Source of the DNA: Octopus bimaculoides
Taxonomy: Eukaryota
Assembly: GCF_001194135.2 (NCBI RefSeq)
Contig: NC_068985.1
Location: 17,863,824-17,927,823 of the forward strand
Reading direction: 5' to 3'
Length of the DNA: 64,000 nt
The position numbers were made by a program, and so were the translations under genes. How positions within the stretch are numbered: the stretch's first letter is position 1; each line of letters starts with the position of its first letter. A model generated the notes under the pieces. It was not told where the DNA came from, did no database searches, and saw only the letters and a program-made list of their open reading frames with translations. Below, one piece after another: positions 685 through 28,348 of this stretch.

Positions 685-792
685 CTTGTTCTTCTAGTTC
701 TTTTTTAATTCTTTTTTCAAGCTGAACAGCATTGCTGATATTTAGCTGTTTGGCTAACATCTTTGGAGAAATTGATGGTGGATCTTCTAGAT
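685..792 (-). CDS. TADA3: TADA3 coding exon, last one visible (gene continues left of the window)
   Basis: Minus strand tttcag|...|gttaat, 108 nt, phase 1-1. Encodes (D)LEDPPSISPKMLAKQLNISNAVQLEKRIKKELEEQ(G), matching the recalled Ada3 segment LESRIKEELIAQG. Too short for the ORF track. Confidence 0.9.
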
Positions 793-988
793 CTGAAATG
801 TAAAAAACATTCATCAAATATTTCAATATTAAAACCGTTTGAAATATCAAAATAGAGCAAATCTATTCAACATTTAATCTAAGTTTTAATCTGTGAATTG
901 TGCAATTGTTGCTAAAGCAAAATATCATATAAAGTTAGTGAACAAGGGGATTATCTGTATTGTTAGAGTAAAATGCATGTTAGATAAG

Positions 989-1374
989 TTGTTGTTGTTG
1001 TTGGCACTCCGTCGCTTACGATGTCGAGGGTTCCAGGTGATCCGATCAATGGAACAGCCTTCTCGTGAAATTAGCATGCAAGTGGCTGAGCACTCCACAG
1101 ACACATGTACCCTTAACGTAGTTCTCGGGGATATTCAGCGTGATACAGTGTGACAAGGCTGACCCTTTGAATTAGAGGCACAACAGAAACAGGAAGTAAG
1201 AGAAAGTTGTGGTGAAAGAGTACAGCAGGGTTCGCCACCATCCCGTGCCGGAGCCTCGTGGAGCTTTAGGTGTTTTCTCTCAATAAACACTCACAACGCC
1301 CGGTCTGGGAATTGAAACCGCGATCCTATGACCGCGAATCCGCTGCCCTAACCACTAGGCCATTGCGCCTCCAC
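989..1374 (-). mobile_element. Full-length tRNA-headed SINE, family A (octopus OR-type; name not verified)
   Basis: Minus strand starts with a tRNA-like head (A/B-box-like motifs) and ends in (CAA)n. Perfect 11-bp TSD tgttagataag at 978-988 and 1375-1385. Confidence 0.92.
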
Positions 1375-1512
1375 TGTTAGATAAGATTCAATAAAAAAAA
1401 AAAAAAGTTTGCATTTGTATATCAATAAAACTTCAAAGTAACATCTACTTTTCCATGTTTGCATGAGTCAGATTTTCTACAGCTGCATACCGTTTCTGTC
1501 GTCAATACTCAC

Positions 1513-1575
1513 CTGTTTCCAGGCACTCAAATTTCCCATTGGAAGCTATATGATGATGTTGCTTGACTTGTGATG
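1513..1575 (-). CDS. TADA3: Candidate 63-nt cassette exon of TADA3
   Basis: cccttgtctcag|...GAAACAG|gtgagt. Symmetric phase 1-1 and open in the TADA3 frame (ASQVKQHHHIASNGKFECLET). No homology support. Confidence 0.35.
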
Positions 1576-2139
1576 CTGAGACAAGGGTGCATATACTCAC
1601 ACATACACTAATACATGCATATATAAGATGGGCTTCTCTCAATTTCTGTCTACCAAATTCACTCACAAGACTTTGATTGGCCTAGGGCAGTAGTAGAAGA
1701 CACTTGCCCAAGGTGCCATGCAGTGGGATTGAACCTGAGACCACATAGTTGGGAAGCAAGCTTCTTAACCACAGCCACACCTGTAGCAATAAATTATTTA
1801 ATGCAAATCAACATTGCTGTTTCTAAAACTGGTGAAAGGCAATGAGGAAGCTCATGTAGTCATTTGAACTGCTAGAAATAGCAGCAAAAAATCTCTCTCA
1901 AATCAAATCTAGTCTTAAATAAAGACATATTGAACAATATAGTCTCAGCTACATATAAAATGGAATGGCCATGGATGGAATGCCTTTGACCACAGGCTTG
2001 CTTAATCAGGGCAAACTTGCTGCTAAACAATATCATTAACAAAAAATATAGCGTATATGTAGTATATTCAAAACGGTGACCAAAAAATTCTTTCCAAAAC
2101 TCATTTATAAATATTTAGGACCTTAGAACTTTTGTTATC

Positions 2140-2567
2140 ATCATCATCATCGTTGTTTAATGTCCGCTTTCCATGCTAACATGGGTTGGATGATTTGACT
2201 GAGGACTGGTGAACCAGATGGCTACACCAGGCTCCAATCTGATTTGGCAGAGTTTCTACAGCTGGATGCCCTTCCTAACGCCAACCACTCCGAGAGTGTA
2301 GTGGGTGCTTTTATGTGCCACCAGCATGAAGGCCAGTCAGGCGGTACTGGCAACGGCCACGCTCAAAATGGTGTATTTTACGTGCCACCTGCACAGGAGC
2401 CAGTTCAGCAGCACTGGCAACGATCTCGCTCGAATGTCTTTACACATGCCATCCGGCACAAGTGCCAAGAAGGCGATGCTGGGCACAGGTGCCGTGACAG
2501 TTTCGCTTTCGCTTGCCCCAATAGGTCTTCGCAAGCAGAGTTTCGTTTCCAATGAAGGGGACGACGT
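2140..2567 (-). mobile_element. LINE 3'-UTR-derived repeat
   Basis: Reverse complement of the 3' UTR at 10830-11325 (ctacagctggatgcccttcctaacgccaaccac). Many shorter copies, e.g. ~6150-6290, 6730-7010, 7780-8155, 20350-20540, 23630-23820, 30410-30645, 31950-32135, 42735-42980 and 43490-43680. Confidence 0.8.
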
Positions 2568-2630
2568 TGGCATTATTAATTCAAGCAGTGAGAAAGTGAT
2601 AAAGTCAATCAACTGGAAAGTATTTAATAC

Positions 2631-2743
2631 CTTTAGTGCTAATATCTGCTGTCGTATCATCAACTGGTGCCATTACATGTTCTTCAATAAGTGCAGTAAC
2701 AAGTCGTTGAGTAAGAGGACCAAAAGGGGAATCATCATTGGAA
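2631..2743 (-). CDS. TADA3: TADA3 coding exon
   Basis: tttgtttcctttcag|...AAAG|gtatta, 113 nt, phase 2-1. Encodes SNDDSPFGPLTQRLVTALIEEHVMAPVDDTTADISTK, matching the Ada3 motif PFGxLTQRLxxALxEE. Confidence 0.92.
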
Positions 2744-4596
2744 CTGAAAGGAAACAAAAATTGCAATAACTAATTAATTGTCAAAATATAATGAGTATAA
2801 CCAATGTCTTTGAAAGAGGCATGAACATCACACAATCTCATTTCTTCTGTCTTTTAATGCTGAAATGTTATATTAATGTATGTAACTAATATTTCTCAAA
2901 CTCTAAGAAAATTTGAAGTAATTGTTTAACAAGTCAAGTCCCTGACTCAGTTTACAGATCTGGTCGTAGACAGTTCACTTTAACTTACTTCAGAAAGGCA
3001 AGATTATCATATCATATCATTCACATCTCAACCACTGCCACCCTCTGTTACATGTACATAAAGCCTTCTGTCAGTGTAACATCAAAAAAACAAAAAAAAA
3101 CAAAGAAAAAGAAAAAAAAACTCCCACTATATTCCCAAAGCTAATACAACCAGTCTTTCTGTAACTAACAGAGGCACTTTCAAGAAGAGTTAGAAGGAGT
3201 GTTTTCATTGCACAAACAATGGATGGTTAAGAATGGTCACATGACATAATAAATGTACTGACAATGAGATATTTCTTAACCAAGTGCATTACTTACTGAG
3301 ACAAAAACAGTCTTCATTCTGTGAATATATTTCCTATGATTTAGCAGTAGATAGATTTAGTGTAAATATTTAGTCAACAATACCTATGATCAAAAACATT
3401 TTAGTCATAATCATCCCATGCTTTAGATATAGTTTGCTCCTAACTACATTTTATTAAATGAGTTTTCTTTTTGAAGATGGCAGAACCAATAACAATCTAG
3501 GTAGTTCCTCCTTTCAATTAATTCCACAGGAAAAATTAGTCAAAAATTCATTTACTCTCTCCAGTTTTTAAATATTCAAAATCTCAAAGTTAAATCAATC
3601 TAGCTTAAAAAAAAAAGGATCAATCAATATGAAATTTAATTTGATACATTAATGTTGTATATTTTATTAAACAAAACAACTACAAATTATAATGAAAAGT
3701 TATTTTCTATCAATATTAGAATGCATTTCTTTTTTTTTTTTTTTTTTGCTCTCAGCGCAAAAGTGAATTTTTGAAGCATACAAGTGAATAGGACAAACAA
3801 TTGAAGCATTCAGGTGGATATGACAATTATTTAGGAGATTTGTGTGGAAGTAACAAGCAACAAGTCAATAGCAGGAAATTAAAAAAAAATCCCAAAATAA
3901 ACAAGCATGTTAGAAGGAGAAAAAAAAGAAGAAGAAAAGGTTTAATACCCAGTGCAAAGAAGATTGCTCATATGTTAATAGAAGAAATATTTGAAATAAA
4001 ATATGCTTTAAGAATTTTTTTTTTCAAAAATTCCTTACAGCTTCTTAAGAGTCTTAAATTGCATACTACATTTCAATTAAAGAATAAGTTATTGACTCAG
4101 CAAGATGATTTTAACCCTTTAGCATTTAAACAAGCCATATCCGACCCAAATATTCTACCTGATTTTTTATTCAAACTGGTCAGATCTGGCCTGTCATACT
4201 TATCCTACAATGTCATTCTAAAAATATATAATCATATCATTGAAATCTCAAAGTTACAAAATACTTAATTATGATTAATTCAAAACAATGTGAATAAATA
4301 AGCATTACATTTGACAGAAATAACCTTGATGCTAAAGGGTTAAGAAATTTCAGTTTCAAAACTTAAAAAGCTTCAATTAGACAGTGAAGGGGATGGGGGG
4401 AGAAATCTTGAGTAGAACTTGTTTTCTCTTCTCCAATTTCTTAACTGTGGAAGAAGATAAGGGGGAGGAGAAGTATTAACAAAAAAAAAAAAGAGAGAGA
4501 GAATTAGATGGAAGATAGAGGGAACAAGCAGAATTTGAGGTAAATGTGATTCCTGGTAAGGGGTGGGGGAGGAATATAAATCAAAAATATACTCAC

Positions 4597-4602
4597 CCTT
4601 TC
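4597..4602 (-). CDS. TADA3: Candidate 6-nt microexon (GAAAGG) of TADA3
   Basis: Minus strand gtaactaacaattatttctttcttgttgctcttacaacag|GAAAGG|gtgagt: CTAAC branch point, pyrimidine tract, CAG acceptor and consensus donor. Frame-preserving in the phase-2 intron. Confidence 0.45.
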
Positions 4603-5169
4603 CTGTTGTAAGAGCAACAAGAAAGAAATAATTGTTAGTTACATTGTCTGTAGTTGAGATTACTTTCATAAAATCTCACTAGTAACTAAATAATACATTT
4701 ACAAAATATATCGAGTTTTAGTGAGATGTGATAACACTCGCTTGAAAAACACAGCCTTTATACTAAGTGAAGACTGATGATATATCTGCTGAATGGTAAG
4801 TTTTCTGTTATCGTCATCAGTGTAATTTGTTAGTAAACAAAATAAAATGATGAACAGAATTGTAGCTTGTATTTTCTTCTGGTAAATAAGGAATAATGAC
4901 ATCTTCTTACGAGACTGTACAACAAGCTGAACAACTCTCTATGTTGCATTTTTTATCTTCTTCTTGCTCCAGTCATTAGACTACAGCCATACTGGGGCAC
5001 TGCACTGAAGGATTTTTAGACAAATGAAATGGCTCCAGGACTTATTTTCTTACTTTTTCTATAGGTCGCTTTTCCAGGACTGCGAAGTTACAGGGATGTA
5101 AACACACCAACACTAGTTGTCAAGCAGTGGGTGGAGGCAAACTCAGATACAAAGACACACACAAGATAT

Positions 5170-5337
5170 ATGTATATGTTCTTTTACTTGTTTCAGTCAT
5201 TTGATTGCGGCCATGCTGGAGCACCGCCTTTAGTCGAACAAATCGACCCTAGGACTTATTCTAAGTTACGGGGATGTAAACAAACCAGCATCGGTTGTCA
5301 AGCGATGGTGGGGGGACAAACATAGACACACCAACAT

Positions 5338-5379
<42 letters not shown>

Positions 5380-5536
5380 CAGGCTTCAGCTTCCATCTAC
5401 CAAATCCACTCACAAGGCTTTGGTCGGCCCGAGGCTATAGTAGAAGACACTTGCCAAAGTTGCCACGCAGTGGGACTGAACTCAGAACTATGTGGTTGGT
5501 AAGCAAGCTACTTACCATGTAGCCACTCCTCCTACA

Positions 5537-5552
<16 letters not shown>
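5170..5552 (-). mobile_element. SINE family B (tRNA-like head, internal TA/CA microsatellite, long tail)
   Basis: ctaccaaatccactcacaaggctttggtcggcccgaggctatagtagaagacacttgcc head region, plus ttgtttcagtcatttga...gctggagcaccgcc tail. Other copies or fragments at ~320-460, 1625-1782, 5600-5750, 5950-6105, 13200-13330, 48310-48460 and 59595-59790. Confidence 0.82.
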
Positions 5553-5581
<29 letters not shown>

Positions 5582-6381
5582 CACACACACACACACACAC
5601 ACAACAGACTTCTTTCAGTTTCTGTCTACCAAATCCACTCATAGAGCTTTGGTTGCCTGAAGATTATAGAAGACACCTGCCCAACTTGTCATGCAGTGGG
5701 ACTGAACCTAGAACCATGTAGTTGAGAAGCAAACTTCTTACCTCACAGCCTATGTGCAACCATGCTGAGGCACTGCTTTGAAGAAAATTTAGTTGAATGA
5801 ATTGAACCTTGTACTAAATTTTTTTTTTAAAGCCTGGTACTTATTTTATTGGTTTCTTTGCTGAACCACTAAGTTACAGGCTCTTAAACAAAGCACCACC
5901 AGGTGTCAAGATGTGGTAGGGGACAAACACAGACACAAACACACACATACATGGGCTTCTTTCAGTTTTCACCAACCAAATCTACTCACAAGTGTTTGGT
6001 TGAGTTGAGGCCATACAAGAAGACATTTGCCCAAGGTGCCACGCTGTGGGACTGAACCCAGAACCATGTGACTGGGAAGTAAACTTACCACACAGCCATG
6101 CTTGCACCGATCAATATAAAAAAATAAATTGTCATCATTATTATTATTATTTAATGTTCTCTTCCCATGTTGGCATGGTTGGATGATTAGACAGGATCCT
6201 GCATTGAACTCCAATGTCAGCCTTGGCATGCTTTCTATGGCTGGATGCCCTTCCTAGCTTCAACCTTTTTACAGTATGTAATAAATAAAAGAAAAAATGT
6301 AAACATGAATGGGTTCCACAAACAAACAAAGTTTCAATGAGAAGTACCTTAAAAAAATAAGTTACGAAACTTAAAACTTAC

Positions 6382-6475
6382 CAACTTTCAGATTTTTTTA
6401 AAAGGTTGGTAGATTCATTGGAATTTGTTGCAGTTGAATTATTGTTATTCCGTCGTTTATCAGAGATCTTGGCAC
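6382..6475 (-). CDS. TADA3: TADA3 coding exon
   Basis: ttcttcctaaaaag|...AGTTG|gtaagt, 94 nt, phase 1-2. Encodes (G)AKISDKRRNNNNSTATNSNESTNLLKKSES (LLKKSE as in Ada3). Supplies exactly the phase change needed between the 8205 and 2743 exons. Confidence 0.87.
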
Positions 6476-8204
6476 CTTTTTAGGAAGAAAAATGAAAGAA
6501 AATGGTTTAGTAATAAGATGAAAAAAAAAATTTCCAGATGAATTAAAAATTCTAATTTTACAAAAATTCAAGAATCTGCAAGACAGCTGCATAAGTCAGA
6601 TTTGAGACCAAAGAGTTATGAAGTTGAAAATCCATTTCAGTTACACTGCAACAAAATAAACCAAAAAGTTGATAACTTAAATCAACTTGGCTAATACCCC
6701 TCTCCCAGCTGAAGGGGGATTTTATTTTGCAAGTTACTTGGTGACCATGTTAGTGCTGGTACCATGTAAAAAGTAGCAGTGTTGATACCACATAAGAAGC
6801 ACTGGTGATGATGCCAAATAAAAAGCACTGGTGATGGTGCCATGTAAAAAGTATTCACTACACTCTGTCAAGTGGTTGGCTTCCAGCTGTAGAGACCATG
6901 CCAAAATAGACAATGGAACCTAGTGTGACCCCTGGCCTTTACCAGCTACTGTCAAAAAGTTCAAACCATGTTAGCATGGAAGGTAGATGTTAAATGATGA
7001 GGATGATTATGATGACAGTTCATACCAGCCAAACACACACACACACACAGGGTGTATGGTGATACTGAAATGAAGCCCCAGTTGCATTATTGTGATATAT
7101 CACTATTTATAAAATTACCAAGGATCCAAATACAAGGTATTGCTAAGAATGTTACCACAAAAAGTTTCTGCTTTGTATTGGAAGGAGGAGGAGGAGGAAA
7201 AGAAGGTGCTGCCACTGCCACCACAATTTTAAATAGCAAATCTTTATATCTGTTTATACATTTACTTTGTTTTTATGTCTGTTTTTTCCATGGCAGCATG
7301 AGTTGGATGAATATGTTATTGAGGTATGTGATTTTGGGTTCAATCCCACTTCATGGCATTTAGGCAGATGTCTTTTACTATAGTCATGGGCAAATCAAAA
7401 CCTTGTGAGTAGATATGGCAAATAGAAACTGAAAGAAGCCTATTGTATGTGTAAGTTTCTTGACTCAACATTGCACGACTGTTGTAAGTGAGCATTGCCA
7501 TCATACAGTTGTTGTTTGTTTGCAATCTTTTGTGAAAATATACCTTGGCATGGGGAAAGATTACCTCCCTTGCAAACAGGTGATGGCTGGCAACAGGAAA
7601 GGCATCTTGCCATAGAAAAATCTGCCTCAACAAAATTCTCTGTGACACATGCTAGCGTGGAAAAGTGAACGTTAAAATGATGACAATGATGATGATGATA
7701 AAGTTACACTGTAAGAAAAGAAACAAGTCATAGCAGAAGACACAGAATAAGAAATCATCTATGTCTACCAGTGAGGAGCACAAATAGATTGTATTAACAA
7801 AATTTATGGCTGGATGCCCTTTCTGTAAAATTGTTGGCAATAGGACGGGCATCCAACCGTAAAAACCATGCTAAAAGAGACCTCGCGGTTGCTGGTGTTA
7901 TGTGAAAAGCAACCAATTCACTCTGTAAAGTGATTGGTGTTAGGAACGGCATTCAACCATGAAAACCATACCAAAAGAAACTGTGCTGGTGTTTCTTGGA
8001 AAGCAGTCATGATGTTAGGAACGGCATCCAGCTGTAAAAAGCATCCCAAAACAGACAGTGGAGCTTACTATACTCCTCTGGCTAGCCAGCTCCTGTCAAA
8101 TTATCCGACCCATGCCAGCATGGAAGATGGACTTTAAATGTTGATGATGACGATGAAAACTGATATACTGAAAAGCAAACAGAATGGGAATTTAAGATGT
8201 GTAC

Positions 8205-8454
8205 CTTCTTTTTGTTCATCCATGATATCTTCTTGAGCCCATCGTTCCGAGTAATGTTTGCCCAAAGGCGGAATTTTGAAAAACTCACTATCATCTTTAA
8301 TTGTAACCAGAACTTCTTCTAGAACTTTCATATCTTCAGTACTGATTTCTGCACAGTAAGGATCAACTGATGCCCAAAAGCGATTTACAATATCATTTTT
8401 CTGGCTACGAGCTATGTCCGAGGATTCTGAAATGTCATAGTCAGGCATTTTCAC
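8205..8454 (-). CDS. TADA3: TADA3 coding exon (conserved core)
   Basis: ttttgtag|GTG...GAAG|gtacac, 250 nt, phase 0-1. Contains NRFWASVDPYCA and KIPPLGKHYSERWAQED, hallmark Ada3 motifs. Confidence 0.96.
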
Positions 8455-8607
8455 CTACAAAAAATACAAATGTTTTTTAAAAAAATTAGGAGTCATATTA
8501 TTTTGATTCTTTAATCTGCCACCTGAAAACAACATTAGAATTTTAAAAACCAAACGCGTCAACACTAATATCTATTTTTTACTTAACAAAATCCCATAAA
8601 AATTATA

Positions 8608-8890
8608 CCAACCACATGGTTCCAGGTTCAGTCCCACTGCATGGCACCTTCTACTATAGCCTTGAACCGACCAAAGGCTTGTGAGTGGCTTTGGTAGATA
8701 GAAACTAAAAGAAGCCCGTCGGATATATACACACATATGTATATGTGTGTATGTTTATGTGCCTGCGTTTCTCCTCCCACCATCGCTTGACAACCGATGC
8801 TGGTGTGTTTACATCTCCGTAACTTAGCAATTCAGCAAAAGAGACCAATAGAATAAGTACTAGGCTTACAAAAAATAAGTTCTGGGGTTC
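8608..8890 (+). mobile_element. SINE family B, opposite orientation to the 5170-6105 copies, runs into N gap
   Basis: caaccacatggttccaggttcagtcccactgc...ctactatagccttgaaccgaccaaaggcttgtgagtgg... Confidence 0.8.
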
Positions 8891-9555
8891 NNNNNNNNNN
8901 NNNNNNNNNNNNNNNNNNNNNNNNNNNNNNNNNNNNNNNNNNNNNNNNNNNNNNNNNNNNNNNNNNNNNNNNNNNNNNNNNNNNNNNNNNNNNNNNNNNN
9001 NNNNNNNNNNNNNNNNNNNNNNNNNNNNNNNNNNNNNNNNNNNNNNNNNNNNNNNNNNNNNNNNNNNNNNNNNNNNNNNNNNNNNNNNNNNNNNNNNNNN
9101 NNNNNNNNNNNNNNNNNNNNNNNNNNNNNNNNNNNNNNNNNNNNNNNNNNNNNNNNNNNNNNNNNNNNNNNNNNNNNNNNNNNNNNNNNNNNNNNNNNNN
9201 NNNNNNNNNNNNNNNNNNNNNNNNNNNNNNNNNNNNNNNNNNNNNNNNNNNNNNNNNNNNNNNNNNNNNNNNNNNNNNNNNNNNNNNNNNNNNNNNNNNN
9301 NNNNNNNNNNNNNNNNNNNNNNNNNNNNNNNNNNNNNNNNNNNNNNNNNNNNNNNNNNNNNNNNNNNNNNNNNNNNNNNNNNNNNNNNNNNNNNNNNNNN
9401 NNNNNNNNNNNNNNNNNNNNNNNNNNNNNNNNNGTACTTTATTTTATTGACCCAGAAAGGATGAAAACTGAAGTTGACCATGGTAGAACTCAGAATGTAA
9501 AGCGGGAAGAAATGTTACTAAGCAAATTTCTCAATGCAATAATGATTCTGCCAGC

Positions 9556-11684
9556 GCTCCTTTTTTTTGAAAAAATATATAAAATTTTGTTACGAGAACA
9601 TTTTTCTAGTGGCTGGTTTATGGAAAAGAAATCACCACTAGAACGTCTTGACCAGCCAGTGTGTAGGAAGGCAGTGGAAGGAGTTCAGGGAATCGTAACC
9701 TCTTGGTAAAGGGAAGATTTCTCTTTCCACATAAATGACAGAAGCAAATGTAAGAATTGTGATGCTACATGTTGGGAGACATGAATTACCTGTGTATGAG
9801 AGATTGACAACAGGATCAGTCCTCAGCTCCCTCTTATTCATCATAGTCCTCCAGACAATAACAGAGGAATTCAGGACGGGCTGCCCCTGGGAGCTCCTGT
9901 ATGCTGATGACCTTGCCCTAATAGCTATATCACTATCAGAACTAGAGAAGTTTCAGGTGTGGAAGCAAGGTCTAGAATTGAAGAGCCTTTGAGTCAATCT
10001 AGCAAAAATCAAGTCTTGGTAAGTTGGAAGACAGACAAATCACAAGTCCTTTCAGGTAGATGGCCCTGCTTGGTCTGCAGAAAAGGCATAGGTAGAAACT
10101 CCATAAGATGTACCCAGTGTAAGCTATGGACATGCAGCAATATCAAAGGAAGGTTAACTGGGAAGATAGGTTTTTGCACGTGGCAGATGCACAGGGGCAA
10201 TAAACACTGAAGGTGTTTATTGATTCCATCACATGCCAGGGGGAAAAACTAGAAGTAGTTGATAGTTTCCGTTACCTAGGTGACCAAGGCAGTAGTGGGG
10301 TGGATGCTCTGAGAGTGTAGTTGCAAGAATAAGAAAAAGCCTGGGCAAAGTTCAGAGAGCTCCTACCTTTGCTGGTAACAAGGGGCTTCTTGCTCAGAGT
10401 GAAAGGTAGACTGTAAGATGCACGTGTGCGAACAACCATGCTACATGGCAGTGAAATATGGGCTGTGACTGCTGAGAAAGAAATAAAGCTAGTATGCCCT
10501 GTTGGATGTGTAATGTCAGTGTACATACATGAGAGAGTGTAAGCGCCCTGAGAGAAAAGTTGGGCATAAGAAGCATCAGATGTGGTGTGCAAGAAAGACG
10601 ACTGCGCTGGTATGGTCATGTGTTGTGTATGGGTGAGGACAGCTGTGTTAAGTGTCACACCCTAACAGTGGAGGGAATCTGTGGAAGAGGTAGACCCAGG
10701 AAGACATGGTGTGAGGTGGTGAAGAACCACCTTCAAACGTTGGGTCTCACAGAGGCAATGAAAAGCAACCAAGACCTTTGGATATATGCTATGCTTGAGA
10801 AAACCCGGCAAGCCAGGTGAGATCGTAGCCGTAGCTGATGCCAGTGTTGCATATGAAAGTATCCTTCACTTGTCAGGCAAATATGCTGAGCTCGAGAAGA
10901 CCTGTTGAGTCAAGTGAAATCATAGCCGTGGCTGATGTCAGTTCTGCCTGACTGGCACCCGTGCCAGTAGCATGTAAAAAGCACCACTTGAGCGTGGCTG
11001 ATGCTAGTGCCACCTGGCTGACACATAAAAAGTACCATTCAAGCATGGTCAATATCAGTGCCGCCTGCTCCCAAGCAGGTGGCATATAAAAAGCACCATT
11101 CGATGGTGGTCGATGCCAGTGTTGCCGACTGGCCCCTGTGCTGGAGGCACGTAAAAAGTACCCACTACACTCTCAGAGTGGTTGGCATTAGGAAGGGCAT
11201 CCAGCTGTAGAAACCTTGCCAGATCAGATTGGAGCCTGGTGCAGCCTCCTGGCTTGCCAGTCCTCAGTTAAACTGTCCAACCCATGCTAGCATGGAAAGC
11301 GGATGTTAAACAATGATGATGATGAATATAAACACTTCACTTCTACAAGACTTTCTCAGCTTGTGCTTTGCCTTTCATGTAGGTTAACATTACATAAACA
11401 ATGGATCATAGTTACATCACTGCTGTCAATCTTTCACACAGAGATAGTTCATGTCTCCCAACATGTAGCATCACAATTCTTACATTTGCTTCTGTCATTC
11501 ATGTGGAAAGAGAAATCCTCCCTTTACCAAGAGGTTACAATTTCCTGAACTCCTTCCACCTCTTTCCTACTCTCTGGCTGGTCGAGAGGCTCTGGTGGTG
11601 GTTTCTTTTCCATAAACCAGCCAAAGAGCCACTAGAAAAATGTCCACGTAACAAAATTTTATACATTCTTAAAAAGTAGGAACA
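9556..11684. repeat. Inverted pair of ~250-bp segments (~9556-9812 and ~11420-11684) bracketing the LINE fragment
   Basis: For example gatttctctttccacataaatgacagaagcaaatgtaagaattgtgatgctacatgttgggagacatgaa matches its reverse complement on the right. Scattered mismatches and one 7-nt indel. Confidence 0.88.
9813..11325 (+). mobile_element. 5'-truncated, frameshifted RTE-type LINE (RT C-terminal half plus 3' UTR)
   Basis: GSVLSSLLFIIVLQTITEEFRTGCPWELLYADDLALIA (YADD motif), then IRCGVQERRLRWYGHV and GRGRPRKTW, typical of the RTE-clade ORF end. 3' UTR ends in (GAT)n. Confidence 0.9.
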
Positions 11685-12147
11685 ATATTAATGCAACGAA
11701 TTAAGGTGGCAAGTTGGCAGAATCGTAAGCATGCCAGACAAAATACTTAGAGGCATTTTGTCAGTTTTTATATTCTGAGTTCAAATTCCTTCGGGGCCGA
11801 CTTTGCCTTTCATCCTTTCGGGATCGATAACATAAGTACCAGTTGATGTAACTGACTCAGTTCCTCTACCGAATTTTCAGGCTTTGCACCAAAATGTGAA
11901 ACCAATGTTATTGCAGTGAATTAAAATCATGTGAATGGAGTTGGAGTTACTGGTGCAGTAAAGAGGAGGGCCATAAATTCCATTACTGAAGCTGTGACTT
12001 GATCAACTGCAGGGAGATTAACTGGGTGAAGGGTCTGATGTTAAAAGACTCGAAACCCTCCATGAGACCCCACAAACGTCACTGATGATGCATCCCAGAG
12101 TATCCATCAGATGTATTTCAGATCTAAGAAATATATAATTTTAAATT

Positions 12148-12453
12148 ACGGAGATGTACTTGCATAGCAAGTGACCTGATCTGAGATCGTGTGCTGGAAC
12201 GAAAACAATTGCAGCGTGGAAGGTGTTTATAAGCCATTTAAAATAACACACAAAAGCCGTCAGATTCACTTCAACATTTAAATTTAATTTGTCAAAATAT
12301 TTTCGTCACTTTGAGACTGCGACCTGTTCACTGACAAAATTGTGCTGCATCTTTTGTCAGTGAACAAAATTAAATTTAAATGTTGAAGTGAATCTGACGG
12401 CTTTTGTGTGTTATTTTAAATGGCTTATAAACACCTTCCACGCTGCAATTGTT
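12148..12453. mobile_element. 306-bp insertion with an internal foldback (perfect 88-bp inverted repeat)
   Basis: 14-bp direct repeat tataattttaaatt at 12134-12147 and 12454-12467. Arms 12203-12290 and 12367-12454 are exact reverse complements. Nested 15-bp IR at 12325-12339 and 12352-12366. Confidence 0.85.
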
Positions 12454-12514
12454 TATAATTTTAAATTTGTGTGTAAAATTGGAACAATTAAAATTTAATT
12501 GGAAATTTACTAAC

Positions 12515-12652
12515 TTGTGAATTTTTGTTCTTTGGCCTTCCTGGTCCACTACAATGAGTAGCTTTTCCATTGCTGTCTTTGAATTTTTTGTTTGGTTTAT
12601 CTTCAGCTCCACTGCCACCTTTCCCTCGTTTTACGACTGGCACATCAGAAGC
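12515..12652 (-). CDS. TADA3: TADA3 coding exon (basic/Gly-rich linker)
   Basis: ttttctccag|GCT...CAA|gttagt, 138 nt, phase 0-0. Ends with GPGRPKNKNSQ, like vertebrate GPGRPKSKNLQ. Confidence 0.9.
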
Positions 12653-13075
12653 CTGGAGAAAACAAAAAAATGAAGCAAAAAAAAAAAAGAAAAGAAAAAA
12701 AGACACTCCTAAATACACATATATATTCTTGTATATATATTTAAACATCAAAAAGGTCTAGAATTTGGTCTAAAAGGAAGAATATCAAGTAATAAATGCT
12801 AAATTTTCCAATGAGGAAGAAGCAGACATTATATCTGAAATACACCAAGTTATTCTTTTACTGGTTTCAGACTTTGGACTGCAGCCAAGCTGGGGTACCA
12901 ACCTTCATGGGTTTTGGTCAAACAACCCCAGTATTTATTTCAGTCTGTACTGATTTTATCAATGTCTATTTTTCGAAAGGCTAAGTTAAGTTTTTATGTA
13001 AAGAGACACAACTTGATACCTGGTAAACATTGACAACATTGACAAGGAAACCACATACATACATACATATATATG

Positions 13076-13127
<52 letters not shown>

Positions 13128-13189
13128 NNNNNNNNNNATATATATATATATATATATACATATATATATGTGTGTATATATATATATAT

Positions 13190-13220
<31 letters not shown>

Positions 13221-13944
13221 ATGGGTTTCCTCTACAATTTTTGTCTACCAAATTCCAGGCACAAGGCATTGATCAACAAAGGCTACAGTTGCTTAAGATG
13301 TCGCACAGTGGGATCAAAATGTGTCTAACAGTTCTATTTTATAAAATAGATTATTTAATTATTAAAACATACATAGCATTATCTTATCAAAACATATTAA
13401 TTAAAATCTTCAACTAAGCAAAAATGTACAGAAATTATTTGATAGGAATGAAAATTGTATGCATGTGTAGATTTTTATCTGGAATAATTAAAAGAATAAT
13501 GTATAACTTTAAAATAAAATGATGAAAAATTATTTTTTTTATATTAAAAATAATTGCATAAGAAAAGTAAAAAAAATCAAACTGAAAAGCTTAGAACTAA
13601 TTGTTGATAATTGCAATTATTAGCAAAAATTTTTAAACAGTTAACAGTGAAAAATTCAGAGAAACCTTAGAGGAAAGCAAAATGTTTTTTTCTATATCTC
13701 AAACTTCAAAAATGACCATTTAATTGGAATTACTTCATTCTAGCAAGCAGCCTGCAAATTTATTGTTAATTTTCTAATTATTATGAATTTAATTTCTTTA
13801 GCTAAGACAATGGGTAGCTCCAATGGTTATATTTTAAATGAAATTATAATTTTGAGAAAAGAATATTATAACAAAGTTGTGCAGAAACAAATTTCAAAAT
13901 ACACAAAATGTTGGTACACTAATTTGAAATCTGATAACATAAAC

Positions 13945-13989
<45 letters not shown>
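13945..13989. repeat. (TAT)n microsatellite
   Basis: Direct reading. Confidence 0.95.
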
Positions 13990-15228
13990 GTTTTTTTATC
14001 AAGTTAGAAAACAATACAAAATCATAACTGGGTTGTTAGATATGGTCTTTGTTCAAGGATGAGATGCTTTAACAGTATTCCCAGTTCTATATTTACATGT
14101 AATAGAACTAAGCCGGTCTACACCTATTTGCGCTCAGCTAGAAAGAGTGAATGATATTCGTTTTGCTGAAGCAACTGTTTAAATAGTTGAATTGCTGTTC
14201 AAGAGCCAATCATTCAGCCTTGAGTAGAAAGTGGATTTTGTTTTCTCAAGCAGACAAACAAATTTCACTGCCTGGTCCCAAAACTGTAGTATGGATTTTT
14301 GGCTAACAAACACCATAACCTTACAGTGAATGCAGTAAAAAAAGAGTTTTACATTATCATCCACAAGCATGATAACTGTCCATATACTAGAAGACTATCT
14401 GGAAATTTTAAGACAATAGGTAAAATATTCCTTAATAGCTTTAATAAGACATGACAATGCCAACATGTCATTATAAATATATCATCATACAAATTTTGTT
14501 TTCCCATATTGGCATGGGATGGAGCACGTACAGGGTCAGCAATTCCGGGGGAAGGGAATAGTTGATAATATTGACTGAAGTTCTCAGTTGGTACTTATTT
14601 TATCAACCCTGAATTGATGAAAGGTAAAGCTGACCTCGGCAGCATTTGAATTCAGAATGTAAAGATGCCTGACATGCTGCTAAGCATTTCATCTGGCATT
14701 GCCGATGATTCTGCCATCTCGTTGCCTTACTCTATTAATAGCAACCTCTATTAATATTAACCTCAGTTACCATAAGTTTTGTAATTTGTCTAACTTAACT
14801 CACTAAAGCTAACTGGATCAAATGATTGATACAAAATCTGGCTTTTTTTTTTTCACATAATATAAATTTCTAATTTTCCCAGCTCATTTTCATATCAAGT
14901 AACTTCAAAATATAATTAGCTTATTAATTGTATGGAATACTAACATTATTTAAGATATTTTCATTTATTTTCAAAGAAAATTATCATCTAACTTTTGATT
15001 GTCTGATTACTGATATTTTTAGTACGATGCCTTTACTAAAAATATTATGACGATCATTAAATTGATAGTAATTTTCCTTTTTGTGAAAATTGAGTAGTTT
15101 TAATGCTTTATAGGAACAATTTTTCATAAACACATCAGCAGAAAGACTTGGAAAATCTTTAGTAGTTTCCCAAACTAACTAATGCTAAAAACTGGAAATA
15201 CATTAATAAACACACACACACACACACG

Positions 15229-15260
<32 letters not shown>

Positions 15261-16444
15261 AGTATATATGTTATAGATATGTTTGTATATGTTAGGTTGT
15301 TATATTTGAACAGTGAAGTGCTCAATCCAGACTTAGAAATGTGTGCATATCAAGCACTATTTATTGACTCATGTGCATCAGGTGAGTTTTTCTGAAAAGT
15401 TCTCAAGAAACTGAGCATATGGTGGTAACAAGTATGGAATATTTCGGTATGCCAGGTCAGAGAACCTTGATCAGTTCTCACTCATGTAATGTTTATATTT
15501 CTTTGTTCAGTTTTTGATTTCCATACAAATCTTAAGTGCTGTACTGTTCTTTAAGTAGTCGTAATGAAATTAATGACACAATCTGTTCTACTAATCTAAA
15601 TCCCAATGTAGCTGGTTAAGATGTATTTTGTAGTGATGTCAATGCAACAGTAAAGTATTTCTTCAAGCATCTTCCTTTAGGGGAGGGGGAAGAAGAAGAG
15701 CTCCATCCTTCAGCAATAAAAACACGTTGAGATTTATATTTCTTGAACCGTTTACAATGTTTTTGCACTGTATCCTTGATAATAGAGGGACATTTCTGGC
15801 AGTCATCAGAAGCTTGTTATACTTTGTTGAACAACCAGTGCAATTTGTGGCTGTTTAGAAAAGGTTTTCTTTCACAAAGAAGAAAACTCCTTACAACACT
15901 CTTTTTCACATTGAGGTAATACTGCAGCTTTCTTCCATTTATTCGTTTTCTCAGTCATTATAAGATAGCCATATATTCTTACAGGTGAGTACTTCATTTT
16001 GTGACTTTTGAAGGTGGCTTTATCTAAGGATAAGTGACCTAGTCCTCTTAATGTCTTTACAATGATATTTCACAACACTAGGCACATAATTTGATTTTGT
16101 ATGTATATAAAATTGGTTGTAGTTTGGTTTCCTGAAGGTCTTAACTGGAGTATAACATTTACTTGTATGTAGAGAATGATGGTATCTGCTTATCACCAAG
16201 GTGCTTCGTAAAATTTCCAATGTAAAATTACAAAACCAGAGTTGTGTGACTGTACAAGTGCTATTTGCCCTATATTTTCTTCTTTTTTAAGGGGTTGCTT
16301 TTTTTTTTCTATGTTATGTTCAAGATTAGTGTTTCATTTTGCCAATGGTTCTGTTCTAGCAGTACACATACACATTAGATGTTATAAACTGCCTTGTCAA
16401 CTGATCTTCAGAAGGTAAATTCTGAAGATTAACAATAAGCTTGG

Positions 16445-16476
<32 letters not shown>

Positions 16477-16884
16477 CAAACAGATCAACCACCAAGAAAT
16501 GCCTAGGGAGAATTTATGCAGGCTTTCAATTAGTAACACCAAGCTAAACACCATGAATAAATCTCCCAATCTCAGCACCAGGAGGCATGTCATATCAGAT
16601 AAGATTTCGATGAAATTCTGTTAAGTAAATTAGATATTTGTAATCTTTCACACTGCACTAAAGCAATGAGGGTCTTCTACTGCACATGTACCAAACATCT
16701 CTTTTTTGTTCTCTTGTCAACAATAAGACATGGGGTTACTATAAATCATCCTTTTGATTGTTTTCCATTGTTTTCTTGTTCCTAGTTAGATATCATTATT
16801 TGTTCTTTACACGTCTTCTCACCATTTCCTAGAACACATTTGCTGAACACTTTCCTGTTTTTGTTCTTGATGTAAGAGACCATG

Positions 16885-17110
16885 TTAAGGCGGCAAGCTA
16901 GCAGAAACATTAGCACGCCGGGCGAAATGCTAAGCGGTATCTCGTCTGCCGCTACGTTCTGAGTTCAAATTCCACCGAGGTCGACTTTCATCCTTTCGGG
17001 GTTGATTAAATAGGTACCAGTTACGCACTGGGGTTGATATAATCGACTTAATCTGTTTGTCTGTCCTTGTTAGTCACCTCTCTGTGTAGCCCCTTCTGGG
17101 CAGTAACTGA
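16885..17110 (+). mobile_element. SINE family C copy
   Basis: aaggcggcaagctagcagaaacattagcacgccgggcgaaatg...catcctttcggggttgattaaataggtaccag. Confidence 0.8.
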
Positions 17111-17131
17111 AATATGAGACCATCATACATA

Positions 17132-17172
<41 letters not shown>

Positions 17173-19666
17173 ACAAACTCAGTAATAAACTAGGAAAAAG
17201 TTGAAATCATTTGATAAGAAGATGAGAATACTGCATAATTGAATCCTTAATATCACTAGCAAGACTTTCTTTTTTATGTTACAGTTCTAAAACTGTGGAT
17301 CACAATAGCAAATAATTAATAACAGATTTATATCCCAGTTATTATTAAACATCACACAAAAGAAAGTGTTAATTCCATTTCATTCATGCAAGGCTTGGGG
17401 TATAATCTTGGGGATAATTAGCATTATCAACATCATCATCATCCTCATCCTCATCCTCATCATCATCATAAAAGTTGTGTTTTTTTTTTTTTGATCCACT
17501 GCTTGACACAGGCCTCCCTCATCACTCCTCATTTTCCCCTAACTCCTGTTCTAGCATTCCAGTTAATCCCTGCATGGTTTATTACCTCATTCCTCCATCT
17601 GCTTCTTGGACGACCCTATGTGAGGAAATACAGAATACCAAATAACATTAATGTTATTTTTGCTAATTAGTTATTTTATTTGTTGAATTAGTAATATTTT
17701 TTTTTTTTAAAAAGCAATGAAATAATTATAACAATTGATAAAGAAATAAAAAACAGCTCTTAATATGAAAACAATAAAAATAAAGGCAAAGTAAATAAAA
17801 ATATAAAAAAAAGATGAGAGAATGAAAATATAAATAAATACAACCAACCAAAAACTTTCTAATTAATATAAAGAACCGATGAACTTGTCCAATAATTAGC
17901 TACAATACAATTAATTACACAATGCTAACAAAGTAATATTTGATTGGTACAAACACACTGGTAGTTTGGTATAAAATTTGCCCAATCAACAAATTGTAAT
18001 TTTTTTTCTTTTTTCCTTTTAAGAAATCTTTGAGATTATACAGTAGAGTTATGGTTAAGTGGCTTGAAACCCCAAACCTCCAGCAGCTGTATGAAAATCT
18101 ACAAAATAATTAATCACATGATAAATGGAGTCCCCAATAGCATCTTACAAATTGAATTAGTCTCCTAACTTTACCTTTGTGCAGCCGAAACTAGAATAAA
18201 GTAATTCAAATAGAATGGAATCATCATAGAACTATTGTTAATAAAGAAAGTTTTTTTTTTAAAGCCTGTCTCCCGTGATAAAAATGAAATATAACAGAAT
18301 AATTTGGCTGTGTTTTATAAGAAGTTTTGCTTTAACTCAGTAACTTTGGAAACTTACAAATAGTACAAACTAGTTTACTTTGTCATTTAGTTCTTTTTTT
18401 TTGTCTTATATAATACCATAATCAGAATACACATTTACAAAATTCCAAGTAAAAGACAGGTCAAATAGAATAAATACTTTTTTTTTTGTTTTACAATAAT
18501 TTTGTTTCAAATATTTAATTAATATAATATGTTGTTTGTCATAGACTGCTTTCTGAGTTGCATGGTTTACATACTAATTCGAAACAACAGACACACACTA
18601 AATAGGAACAAATAATAATAATAATAATAATAATCTACCTAATGGCATTTTACACAAATTGAAATACCTGCACATAATGAATGCAAAAAGTCAAAACATA
18701 GTGCCAAGTTATCCGAGAAAGACTGACAGTGGTAAGTTTTGAAAAAAAAAAATAACAAAAACAAACTAGCATAAAACACAAAGTGATGAAAATACCACAA
18801 ATAGCACTAAAAATACAACTGAGATTATCTTTTGTCTATAGACACAAATGACAGAACTGAAAGCAAATTTATTAGACTAAAACTGATTATGGATTAAAAC
18901 TAAGCTTGATTTTATGAAATAAGGATGGTGCTTAAATTAGGACCACTGATAACAACAGAATGGATCACTAACCATGCAAAATGTTCAAAATAAATTTCCT
19001 GTCCTTTGGACTTTATCAGATTCAGAAAAGCAAAGTAAGGACAAAGGAAATAAAAATTTATTAAAACAAGATGCTTAGATTGAGATAAAAATTATAATTA
19101 GTTTAAAAATATATATTACCAATGAAGCATGTCTAGAAAAGCTTTGATAACAAGAAAAGCAACAGCAATAATGGAAAAATAAAAAGCAGACGGTAAGGAA
19201 AGGCTTACTAAATGAGGCAAAAATAATATAGGAGTTTGCCGTAGGTTCTACGAGAGGGTTGAGAGGTGCAAGGATTCTAGCCCAAAGAAGAAAGATTTAA
19301 GTATAAAAGTGACAAAGGATATGCAAAGACAGTGCATAAAATAAATTTATAATCAAAATCTAAGAATGAGGCTAGTTAAGTGGTGTTAAAAATGCAGAAA
19401 AATTTGAATCTAAATACTTACCTGCTTCTAAAGTGACCCCCACCCTCAAAGGGATAACTGAATAGATACCTTGCTAATATACAATGTCGTACTTTGCCTA
19501 AAAGATACCTGATAATCTAGGCCAAAATTTGACACCACAAACAATGAGATAAAGTTATATATTCAAATCAAATTGCTAATAGCTTTTTACATAATAAATA
19601 TTCAACTCTTATATTCTAACTTTAATAAGATCAACTTTATCATGCTAGCAGAAAAAAATGAAATCA

Positions 19667-19704
<38 letters not shown>

Positions 19705-21049
19705 NNNNNNNNNNNNNNNNNNNNNNNNNNNNNNNNNNNNNNNNNNNNNNNNNNNNNNNNNNNNNNNNNNNNNNNNNNNNNNNNNNNNNNNNNNNNNNNN
19801 NNNNNNNNNNNNNNNNNNNNNNNNNNNNNNNNNNCAAACATATATTCTTTTCTACTCTAGGCACAAGGCCTGAAATTTTGGGAGAGGGAGGTCAGTCGAT
19901 TAGATCGACTCCAGTACACAACTGGCACTTAATTTATTGACTCCAAAAGGATGAAAAGCAAAGTCGACCTCAGTGGAATTTGAACTCAGAACGTAAAGAC
20001 AGATGAAATACCACTAAACATTTCGCCCGGTGTGCTAACATTTCTGCCAGCTCGCCGCCTTATACAAACATATATTTCAGATGAAAGACAATTAATACTA
20101 GCAGTGTCTAGACTATTAGTACCTGCCAAGAGCCCTAGTTATGGGTCAAATAGCAGATGGTATTGTGGCTGAAACATAAGGGCTCAGAGGAGGGCTGGCC
20201 TCTAGACATGTGTCACACAGGACTATTGGATGTGGACATGCCTTGATGTTGGGTGAACCAATCTTCCTGTCTTACAGTTAAATAGGCCCTGTACCTAAAG
20301 AACAAGCTTGAGAAAATAGGAGACTAAACTAAAAATAATTCCAAATAAATCATCACCATCATCATTTAATGTCTGATTCCATGCTGGTAAAAGTTGGACT
20401 GCCTCAAGTTCTACTGTTTGCGTTGGCATCGTTTCTATAGCTCTTCCTAATGCCAACCACTTTACAGAGTGTATTGGGTGCTTTTTAAGTGGTACTGGCA
20501 GTAGTGAGGCCACCAAGTAACTTGAAAGACAAGAGCCCCCCTCCTTCCATTCTCAACTGATGTATGGTGTACTATTGAGGGAGAGAAACAGGGGTCTAGC
20601 AGTAGTAGAGGAGAAACATGGCTATCTCAGGTGGAAAAAGAGAGAGAGAGAGGCAGAAATAAGATGGTGTACATATAATGGGGCATAGACTCAAGTTACA
20701 GGGAGGTGTATATAGTGAAGGGGATTTGAGAGGATGAGTAAGTTCACAATACTGCAAATGGAGAGTGAAAGATGGAGTGGGGATTAGAAGGGTATGTTGT
20801 GGGGAAGAGATTTGACAAGACATTTGTGTGCAGGTAGGATAGCAAGGGAGAGTGGGAGACAGAGGAGAAGGGGAATACTGTGGTGATGGTGAGCATGGGT
20901 GGAGGGAAAGGAGGTGTCAGGAAGATGAAACATGGGGGAGAGGTCTGCCAGGGACAGATTGTTTGTAGGGTGGTAGGGCATGGATGTAAAGGACATGCAT
21001 TTATGGCCTTGATTTTACTTGGCTGGATGTGTTTTCTCAAGCTTAGCAA

Positions 21050-22690
21050 CGTGCCTGTTGTTTTGGTCCTTTGTCTTCAACTCAATGAAGCTCAACACCT
21101 GAAAATCATCTCTCAACACTTTGTCCCATGTTTTCCTCTTGCAGAGGTTCCCCCCACATTTAGAGATTGGATCTTCTTTATGCAGCTGTCTTCATCCATA
21201 TACATCACATGACCATACCAGCGCAGTCTTCTCTCTTGCACACTACACCTGATGCCTCTTATACTCAATTTTTCACTCAAAACAATGCCAGTGTGCATGT
21301 CGAACATGCACACTGGCATTGCACATCCAGCAATTTGACACCTCTGTAATTACTTCTGTCTAAGGCATCTTCTTTACCTTGTAGCAGCTGACTATAATAC
21401 TGCTACACCAGTTATTGGGTATGACCTCTTCTTGGACAACCTGATTAATTATATGGGTGACTAGGCCACACCTCACTCTGCCAGATATTTTAAGCATCTC
21501 AGCAGTAATTCCTGATGGGCCAGGGGCTTTTCCTGTTTTTATATCCTCAATTGCTTTATCTATCATGCTGCTATCAACTTGGATAGTTGGTACTTCTGTT
21601 GTGCTCATGTTAAGAAGATTTACCTTCACCCATGCATTCTCTACATTTAGCTGCCTTTCATAATGGCACCACCAGGCCTTTTTCTTTGCAGAATCACTAA
21701 GTACAAGAGTATCATCATCCATCGAAACATACATCACAATCTTGTTTGACTAACCTCATGCCTCTGGTCCTCCTGTTATAGAACATTGACAAACTTCTTC
21801 TTTTCTGTTTCTTCCCTAGCTAAATATACCTGTTGCCTAGCTTCTCTTCCAGCTACCTGGTATAGTTCTCTGCTACCCCGACTCTTACAGACCTGTTTCT
21901 TTGTTCTTATGGTCCTATCTACTTCACTGTTCCACTACCATGTCACCCTAGGTCTGGTTGGTGCTGAGCACCAGCCATAGATTTAGTCTGTGGCCATCAG
22001 TAAGTTGCCCCATAGTAATTTCCAGTTGGTCTCTGTGTTAGGTGTTTCTATCTCCTCTGCCTTGTTGAATGCTTCAGTTAGGATGTCTCTAAAGCTCTAA
22101 CTATTCAATGGGTCCTTAAGCTTCCAAATCTTCCTTTTCCAAACTGGTTTGCTTCTTGGAGCCCTTCAAGCCTCAAATCTGAAGTTGCTAATGACCAACC
22201 TATGCTGAGGAGCACATTCCTTCCACGTGAAACTCTCTGCATTTATGAGCAACCATCTATTCCACTTTCTGGTGAGAATGTAGTCAAACTGTCTCATGTG
22301 GCCACCAGACTGATAGGTAATCAGGAGACTGGCTGGTTTCCTGAAATTAGTGTTGTAGACCATTAGGTCGTTAGCATCACAGAACTCCAGTAGCCTTCTT
22401 ACCTCTGCATTTAGGGAACCAACTCCATAACCTCCACGCACACCACTGAAGTCACCTAACTGTTACCCAACATGCCCATTGAAGTCACCAGCCATGAAAA
22501 TAAGGTCATTATCATTTGTATTGAGGTAGTCTGCAAAAAGGTATGATAAAATCGGTCAGTTTGTTCATCCTGCAGTTTCAGTTGAGGTTGTAAATGAGAA
22601 ACGAAACAAACGAGCCAAGATATTTTGTATAGGGATGACAGGAAGTTGGAGTTGGTCAACGGAAGTGACAGCCATGCTGCCACCACTGCA
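21050..22690 (-). mobile_element. Internally deleted RTE-type LINE relic (APE endonuclease, linker and C-terminus; RT core missing)
   Basis: GGYGVGSLNAEVRRLLEFCDANDLMVYNTNFRK and FDYILTRK (endonuclease), KTGKAPGPSGITAEMLK (pre-RT), then a jump to QERRLRWYGHV. Confidence 0.85.
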
Positions 22691-23209
22691 AACTAGTAAA
22701 CAAGCCACATGACTTTCATGGGATGAAAATATACGACTTTATGACAAAGACAAGATATACACATTTTCAACACATCAAAAACTTTCATTGGATGAAATTA
22801 ATGACTTTTTCCCAGAAATTTCATAGAAAGAATCAAATAAAAAGGAGGAAACCAAACACTATCCTGTCAGAGTTAAACAATATATAACTAATGTAACTCA
22901 AAGAATTCTATTTAGTTTAGCTTAACAACTGATATTGATTTGAAACTAGTTTTAACATCTTCATGCTATTCTTTTCAATTTATAAACTTTTATTTTATAT
23001 AAATTCTTATCATGTTCTCAATTCTAATAATAAAATAAAAGGGTTCTAGAATTAATGCTCATTTAACATAAAGTGAATAGAATTTGTAATTTAAGAAATA
23101 TCAACCTTGTTGCAATAAAGAAAACAATTAATTCAGAGAGCCTCTATGCAGTCACTTGACTCACCAGACAACTCTTGGAGAGAGAGGGAGAAGGAGAGAG
23201 AGAAAGAGA

Positions 23210-23254
<45 letters not shown>

Positions 23255-24508: not shown

Positions 24509-24556
24509 AGGAAAATTCTTCAAAGTTTCATTTTTATTTTTCACAACACTGTTCTC
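24509..24556 (-). CDS. TADA3: Candidate 48-nt exon of TADA3
   Basis: ttgtctcttgtatctttcag|GAG...CCT|gtaagt, phase 0-0 and open (ENSVVKNKNETLKNFP). Strong splice sites in a phase-0 intron. No homology support. Confidence 0.5.
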
Positions 24557-28086: not shown

Positions 28087-28135
<49 letters not shown>

Positions 28136-28348
28136 TACACAAAGGTATGTGTGCACACAGAGCATATCCATAAGAAATGGTACCTCTGGGCAAATACCAC
28201 AGTAAATTTGCTTTTCAATGATGTATATACATTAAGTATGATACAGAGATGGCTATTTTAATATAATCCTGCTTCTATTCTGCGACAAATTAAGATAAAA
28301 TAATGCATAAGATAAAGAAAAAAACTCATGGAATATATCTATACTAAC

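Follow-up and report, generated by a model that had tools for sequence, protein, structure and literature searches.

A microexon-like 6-nt site in an intron of octopus TADA3: a decoy modestly favoured over a real exon

Results

The candidate site and its host intron

We analysed a stretch of 64,000 nt of the Octopus bimaculoides genome (NCBI RefSeq assembly GCF_001194135.2, contig NC_068985.1, positions 17,863,824 to 17,927,823 of the forward strand), which we call the window. On its minus strand lies the gene for transcriptional adapter 3 (TADA3), and one intron of this gene contains a 6-nt candidate microexon, GAAAGG (4597..4602, minus strand), identified by direct reading of the sequence and by spliced translation. 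A sequence-only reading had proposed it as a microexon regulated in neurons. We favour, by a modest preference, a fortuitous site that the splicing machinery would leave unused.

The host gene is TADA3 as judged from its coding sequence: the spliced translation of the window exons matched proteins named transcriptional adapter 3, with a best E value of 8e-73 in a protein search. The gene table of GCA_001194135.2 places a minus-strand gene at this position, with a PF10198 (Ada3) match and a product of 461 aa. The TADA3 fragment inside the window did not reach this C-terminal PF10198 domain in the Pfam scan.

The host intron is 3,638 nt long (2744..6381, minus strand) and was delimited by reading the flanking splice sites. 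The upstream flanking exon (6382..6475, minus strand; ..AKISDKRRNNNNSTATNSNESTNLLKKSES + TG) was placed by tblastn with the Solemya protein and by spliced translation. It finishes with ...TCT GAA AGT TG at 6382 and is followed by a gtaagt donor. The downstream flanking exon (2631..2743, minus strand; T + SNDDSPFGPLTQRLVTALIEEHVMAPVDDTTADISTK) was placed by tblastn with the same protein and by the orthologous exon in a Logan contig, and it opens at 2743, after ttcag, with T TCC AAT GAT GAT. The flanking exons split one codon as TG / T, and the host intron is therefore of phase 2.

Around the candidate, the minus strand reads aaCTAACaattatttctttcttgtTGCtcttacaaCAG|GAAAGG|GTGAGTat. The 3' splice-site region (4603..4638, minus strand; 9.8 bits) begins with a CTAAC branch-point consensus at 4638-4634, whose branch A at 4635 lies 33 nt ahead of the candidate exon. 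It continues with an AG-free, pyrimidine-rich tract and a TGC at 4616-4614 (-14 to -12 relative to the candidate exon), and ends in the candidate acceptor CAG at 4605-4603, with its AG at 4604-4603. The AG-free zone before this acceptor measures 45 nt. On the other side, the candidate 5' splice site AGG|GTGAGTAT (4589..4596, minus strand; 11.0 bits) has GTGAGT at 4596-4591, within a strong donor-like element, AGG|GUGAGUAU. With 6 nt, the candidate falls in the class of frame-preserving microexons of 3-27 nt, and its AG and GT are canonical.

Use of the microexon would divide the host intron into two half-introns, of 1,779 nt on the upstream side and 1,853 nt on the other. In spliced translations, skipping yields ..KKSES-C-SNDDSPFG and inclusion yields ..KKSES-WKG-SNDDSPFG, in frame and without a stop. 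Inclusion recodes TG|T (Cys) to TGG AAA GGT (Trp-Lys-Gly), five residues ahead of the conserved TADA3 motif PFGPLTQRL. The predicted inclusion junction is AAATCTGAAAGTTG-GAAAGG-TTCCAATGATGA, and the predicted junction k-mers are AAAAAATCTGAAAGTTGGAAAGGTTCCAATGATGATTCC for inclusion and AAAAAATCTGAAAGTTGTTCCAATGATGATTCC for skipping.

These observations bear out the anatomy given by the sequence-only reading, with one small correction. The branch point, the U-rich tract with its TGC, the CAG, the six bases and the gtgagt were all found base for base on the minus strand, the flanking splice sites confirmed a phase-2 intron between exons 6382 and 2743, and spliced translation confirmed the in-frame change from SES-C-SNDD to SES-WKG-SNDD with loss of the Cys. 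The donor had been called consensus, and this held in part: GTGAGT is present as described, but the candidate exon ends in AGG and not in the MAG consensus, so the donor fits 8 of 9 positions and the pattern AGGTRAGT is not matched.

Self-BLAST of the intron against the window revealed interspersed-repeat copies in the upstream third of the host intron (5033..6286). This family has 5-9 further copies in the window, including about 1500-1800, and by size and copy number it looks like a short interspersed nuclear element. We ruled out that the candidate is part of a repeat, the region 4200-5000 being single-copy in the window. Rfam gave no match in the window, and therefore the candidate is not a known intronic RNA gene.

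Site strength and chance expectation

Splice-site scores came from a generic metazoan matrix of our own, which is not octopus-trained. On this sequence-level scale, the 9.8 and 11.0 bits of the candidate compare with 8.3 bits for the donor of exon 6382 and 8.5 bits for the acceptor of exon 2743. The candidate donor ranks second among the TADA3 donors in the window, behind the exon-1 donor alone. The TADA3 donors at 28348, 12514, 8204, 2630 and 684 (minus strand) are mostly off consensus (GTTAGT twice, GTACAC, GTATTA and GTTAAT) and score 2-5 bits. With most real TADA3 donors far from consensus, a generic matrix is thus a poor yardstick for splice sites in the octopus genome.

The candidate is by far the top AG..GT pair of 3-27 nt in the host intron, where the next frame-preserving pair reaches 3.4/6.4 bits. 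Such pairs number 358 in this intron, and 68 of them (19%) preserve the frame without a stop. The bare motif YAG-N6-GTRAGT occurs four times in the window against 1.8 expected, which is not unusual; the candidate stands out only once the score takes in the pyrimidine tract.

On both strands of the window together (128 kb) there are two pairs of candidate quality, the candidate itself and a second one at 23173-23165 (minus strand). This second pair, AAG|AGTTGTCTG|GTGAGT, encloses 9 nt in a phase-0 TADA3 intron, preserves the frame and has an equal or higher score. A long (CT)n microsatellite immediately precedes this pair, which lacks a branch-point motif. We took it as a decoy, and it serves as an empirical control: with a decoy of equal or better score in the same gene, such pairs evidently arise without function.

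Markov simulations gave 0.03-0.11 expected pairs of at least candidate quality per 64-kb strand. An independence estimate from the real strong-site counts on the minus strand (38 acceptor-like and 9 donor-like) gave 0.08-0.14 per 61-kb strand and 0.005-0.008 in the host intron. A survey of both strands of 281 kb of mollusc DNA found one decoy of candidate quality, or about 1 per 280 kb. We take the intron content of the octopus genome to be about 1 Gb, a rough figure, and at this decoy density there should therefore be thousands of decoys genome-wide, several hundred of them in frame. Real microexons with sites this strong presumably number in the low hundreds at most, which is an estimate rather than a measurement.

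Such scores also bear on whether the candidate could be a real microexon that is not specific to neurons, with strong sites that would suffice for constitutive, broad alternative or low-level inclusion without the eMIC domain of SRRM3/4-type splicing factors. Its 11.0 and 9.8 bits exceed the flanking constitutive sites, its branch distance is ordinary and not of the extended type of regulated microexons, and an exon of this kind would be missed by aligners and annotation because 6 nt cannot be anchored. However, constitutive inclusion predicts orthologues of matching length, whereas the orthologues fit the skipping form. We regard this reading as quite unlikely.

Two very strong acceptor-like sites also lie at 4552 (16.0 bits) and 4444 (minus strand), 50-160 nt past the candidate donor where the sequence is rich in pyrimidines, and neither has a usable donor partner. 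A region so rich in splice-like signals might serve another event, either recursive splicing or a longer exon, cryptic or alternative, that takes just its acceptor or just its donor from the candidate. Against this, the host intron is only 3.6 kb long, no good partner site with an open frame is present and the remaining intron pairs score poorly, and we hold such an event to be very improbable. A zero-length recursive splice site was ruled out: it needs an adjacent AG|GTRAGT, and here 6 nt intervene, and the ligated ..GTTG|GAAAGG has no GT at the junction from which a donor could be regenerated.

Neural-type features

According to published work, microexons that depend on SRRM3/4 combine strong 5' splice sites with branch points and pyrimidine tracts that are strong but distant, and in 74-79% of them the branch point and the AG enclose a UGC (10.1101/2024.09.17.613571). 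In Drosophila, eMIC exons are marked by strong CUAAY branch points and UCUC-rich tracts, by AG-free zones of great length and by a UGC not far from the 3' splice site (PMC8797185). The median branch-point distance is 34 nt in ordinary exons and 45 nt in neural microexons (PMC12871342). The rule cited by the sequence-only reading, that microexons are activated by SRRM3/4 through a UGC ahead of the 3' splice site, is thus found in the literature (10.1101/2024.09.17.613571; PMC8797185).

The neural-like architecture that it had assigned to the candidate stood only partly. The layout does fit the published code, but a TGC occurs within 30 nt of 36 of the 69 strong acceptor-like sites in the window, and at 52% of decoy acceptors the motif is therefore near-uninformative here. 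The branch-point distance of 33 nt is near the ordinary-exon median of 34 nt and not near the 45 nt of neural microexons. In this window, neural-like features are weak discriminators.

We can nevertheless outline how a real, cephalopod-specific, neuron-enriched and eMIC-dependent TADA3 microexon would work. In neurons, the Srrm234 isoform with the eMIC domain would attach to the UGC at -14 and would help SF1, U2AF and U2 to engage the CUAAC and the pyrimidine tract. The strong U1-complementary donor would then permit stepwise removal of the two half-introns, and GAAAGG would be inserted in neurons and skipped elsewhere. The CUAAY, the 45-nt AG-free zone, the CU-rich tract, the nearby UGC and the strong donor all match the described code, the insertion is in frame and without a stop, and the pair is statistically unusual for its intron. 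There is a precedent in a general transcription factor, the 6-nt SRRM4-dependent neuronal exon 34' of TAF1 (PMC6948980), and octopus is among the species analysed for tissue-specific exons, including microexons, and these exons were mostly lineage-specific there (10.64898/2026.09.05.749416).

However, the UGC is shared with 52% of decoys and the branch distance is 33 nt against the neural median of 45 nt. Moreover, the aligned orthologues have no insertion, the bivalve intron lacks the site, TADA3 was not found in the microexon literature that we searched, and the candidate exon is, under this reading as under the non-neural one, a prediction from genomic sequence. A neuronal TADA3 microexon is thus a tentative proposal that we judge unlikely.

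Comparison with other sequences

Protein searches for TADA3, run with the inclusion-form fragment and with the junction region (E<=10), returned no cephalopod TADA3, though these are on record in gene tables. The same searches returned no protein with a WKG insertion, and the only near match was P0048, an exon-level open reading frame (ORF). From the 47 TADA3 proteins returned, 19 orthologues could be aligned; none had an insertion at the junction, and their length is that of the skipping form. Two non-cephalopod TADA3 cDNAs from a metatranscriptome, retrieved by a metagenome scan, had no insertion at the junction either. In an exhaustive comparison with cluster representatives, the intronic ORF of 98 aa across the candidate had a single match, of low complexity.

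The bivalve Solemya velum has a TADA3 intron at the same position and in the same phase, with a length of 3,682 nt (..AEQ-R-NVTSPPFG). The sequence-only reading had suggested looking for a conserved AG-6nt-GT in the orthologous intron of other molluscs, and none was found in Solemya velum: its intron has no comparable site, and the best pair there reaches just 6.4/7.0 bits with a stop inside. As Solemya shares the intron but not the site, the intron is old and the site is not anciently conserved. This absence is compatible with a cephalopod-specific exon.

Two Logan contigs, L004 and L005, carry P0048 and have the same acceptor position, and no alignment was obtained between the window and their introns. 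L004 comes from a more distant, cephalopod-like relative, and its orthologous exon is 84% identical in protein with the same acceptor position. No AG-N(3-27)-GTRAG occurs in the 1,418 nt upstream of that exon, where the contig ends. In Argonauta hians, the available locus (L006) reaches no further than 5 kb into the intron that follows TADA3 exons 1-2. At the literature level, we found no paper linking TADA3 to a microexon, octopus and cephalopod microexon studies included.

Other elements of the TADA3 locus

The TADA3 portion in the window covers 685..31816 (minus strand), and the 3' end of the gene lies past the window start. Coding exon 1 is at 31816-31711, with its ATG at 31816. Apart from the two exons that flank the host intron, further coding exons on the minus strand lie at 28524-28349, 24556-24509 (48 nt), 12652-12515, 8454-8205 and 792-685. 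The window has ten runs of N, 3,065 bases in total. Its segment 28481-61295 is 100% identical to a second record of the O. bimaculoides locus (L007; GCA_001194135.2, CM046605.1, 17,892,304-17,925,118).

The 48-nt exon at 24556-24509 is, by its sequence and conservation, a real small TADA3 exon. Its acceptor reads tttcag and its donor GTAAGT, the intron around it is of phase 0, and its reading frame is open (ENSVVKNKNETLKNFP). Its counterpart in Argonauta hians is near-identical (L006, about 3600-3650) and carries an additional AAC codon, for a length of 51 nt, and octopus and Argonauta also share about 45 nt of conserved intron upstream. The exon is not present in the aligned non-cephalopod TADA3 orthologues and is probably cephalopod-specific. 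The products of 461 aa in octopus and 462 aa in Argonauta would fit inclusion of the 48/51-nt exon. It serves as a positive control, as it shows how a real 6-nt exon would be expected to look in Argonauta.

The long TADA3 intron holds two further elements. A block of about 650 nt without an open frame (window 18833-19440, L006 294-937) shows 68-80% identity in the octopus-Argonauta alignment, and on this basis it is a conserved non-coding region. It includes TAG|AAGCAG|GTAAGT at 19430-19416, where the Argonauta counterpart reads TAG|ATACAG|GTACGT. At 21100-22500 (minus strand), ORFs resemble fragments of retroelement reverse transcriptases and matched no Pfam family at E<=0.01.

Head to head with TADA3 lies PIGV (GPI mannosyltransferase 2; window 48916-51292, plus strand). 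Its ORF at 48916-50139 matches Pfam PF04188 and has GPI mannosyltransferase 2 of Octopus bimaculoides as its best match. The TADA3-PIGV neighbourhood also occurs in Argonauta hians, whose gene table gives the 462-aa TADA3 product, and probably in Solemya velum, judging by the neighbouring locus tags ScPMuIL_016403 and ScPMuIL_016404. The synteny is therefore old. An ENA contig (L008) had no TADA3 within 10 kb of PIGV.

Discussion

We examined a 6-nt site in a TADA3 intron that has the layout of a microexon, and consider it somewhat more likely to be a fortuitous pseudo-microexon, an unused decoy, than a real one. A strong acceptor-like sequence would by chance have come to lie 6 nt before a strong donor-like one, in unique DNA of the TADA3 intron. 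The spliceosome would join exon 6475-6382 straight to 2743-2631, giving ..KKSES-C-SNDD. An exon of 6 nt would be too short for joint definition by U1 and U2AF, bound to the GU and the AG respectively; lacking room for both factors, it would be skipped unless a dedicated activator acted on it, or be included at noise level.

While the anatomy of the site, its frame consequences and the rarity of the pair were observed directly, its non-use is what we infer, because under rough genome-wide base rates there are about two in-frame decoys for each real microexon of this quality. Further points in favour of a decoy are the second pair at 23173-23165, the orthologues that fit the skipping form, the lack of a comparable pair in the Solemya intron and in the 1,418 nt of L004, the commonness of the TGC, the ordinary branch distance and a literature without a TADA3 microexon. 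That the site is spliced in at an appreciable level, as a real microexon, is a less probable outcome but still a plausible one. We set our estimates for non-use, for appreciable inclusion and for neuronal regulation from such rough base rates, giving some modest extra weight to the consensus branch point and to the unique sequence around the site.

Several observations weigh against the decoy interpretation. The candidate sites outscore most real TADA3 sites in the window, under the generic matrix. By chance, the host intron should hold only about 0.001-0.002 frame-preserving pairs of this quality, because 0.005-0.008 pairs are expected and 19% of pairs keep the frame. CTAAC accompanies just 5 of the 69 strong acceptor-like sites in the window (7%), and the surroundings of the candidate at 4200-5000 are unique within the window by self-BLAST. 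Moreover, the layout of CUAAY, long AG-free zone, CU-rich tract with UGC and strong donor fits the published eMIC cis code. On the comparative side, the protein sets of orthologues hold mostly canonical isoforms, so the lack of an insertion in them is weak evidence, and the Logan contig L004 stops short of the upstream exon and is possibly too short to show the site.

Among the closest known systems is microexon 34' of TAF1, which is 6 nt long, is used in vertebrate neurons and depends on SRRM4 and on UGCs at -18 and -29 (PMC6948980). Like it, the TADA3 site would be a 6-nt in-frame insertion in the transcription and coactivator machinery with a UGC upstream, at -14 in this case. The two differ in gene, lineage and protein position. 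The nature of the evidence differs as well: TAF1-34' was shown to be neuronal, and SRRM4- and UGC-dependent in minigenes, and eMIC exons in general were defined by RNA-seq together with eMIC loss or gain, whereas the TADA3 site was read from the genome. If real, the candidate would be a lineage-specific microexon analogous to TAF1-34', and not a new mechanism.

With the eMIC (Srrm234) exons of Drosophila and mammals, the site shares an AG-free zone, a UGC, a CU-rich tract and a CUAAY, and its strong 5' site is as in mammals (PMC8797185; 10.1101/2024.09.17.613571). Fly eMIC exons have weak 5' splice sites, unlike the candidate. Besides, its 3' site is strong and compact (33 nt), whereas eMIC-dependent exons have weak and extended 3' regions. 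The bilaterian-ancestral microexons of APBB1/2/3 (6 nt) and MADD (9 nt) belong to the same size class and come from a data set that includes Octopus bimaculoides. However, they have been kept for about 700 million years, while the TADA3 site is absent in a bivalve and TADA3 is unmentioned in the main text of that study (10.64898/2026.09.05.749416).

The site also resembles intronic pseudoexons, in which a good acceptor/donor pair lies inside an intron, as does the second TADA3 pair at 23173-23165 beside its (CT)n. The site is nevertheless a better candidate than a typical decoy, given its consensus branch point, its preserved frame and its position in unique sequence.

A decoy at this position would be a useful caution, as the full textbook architecture of a microexon can then occur without use. 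In the AT-rich, pyrimidine-tract-rich octopus introns seen here, the UGC criterion is near-useless. If the microexon were real and neuronal, octopus neurons would make a variant subunit of the SAGA/ATAC acetyltransferase module, with Cys replaced by Trp-Lys-Gly beside PFGPLTQRL, and a chromatin coactivator subunit would join the octopus microexon repertoire. It would be a second, independent 6-nt neuronal insertion in the core transcription machinery, convergent with vertebrate TAF1, and would thus be relevant to the convergent evolution of neural splicing programmes.

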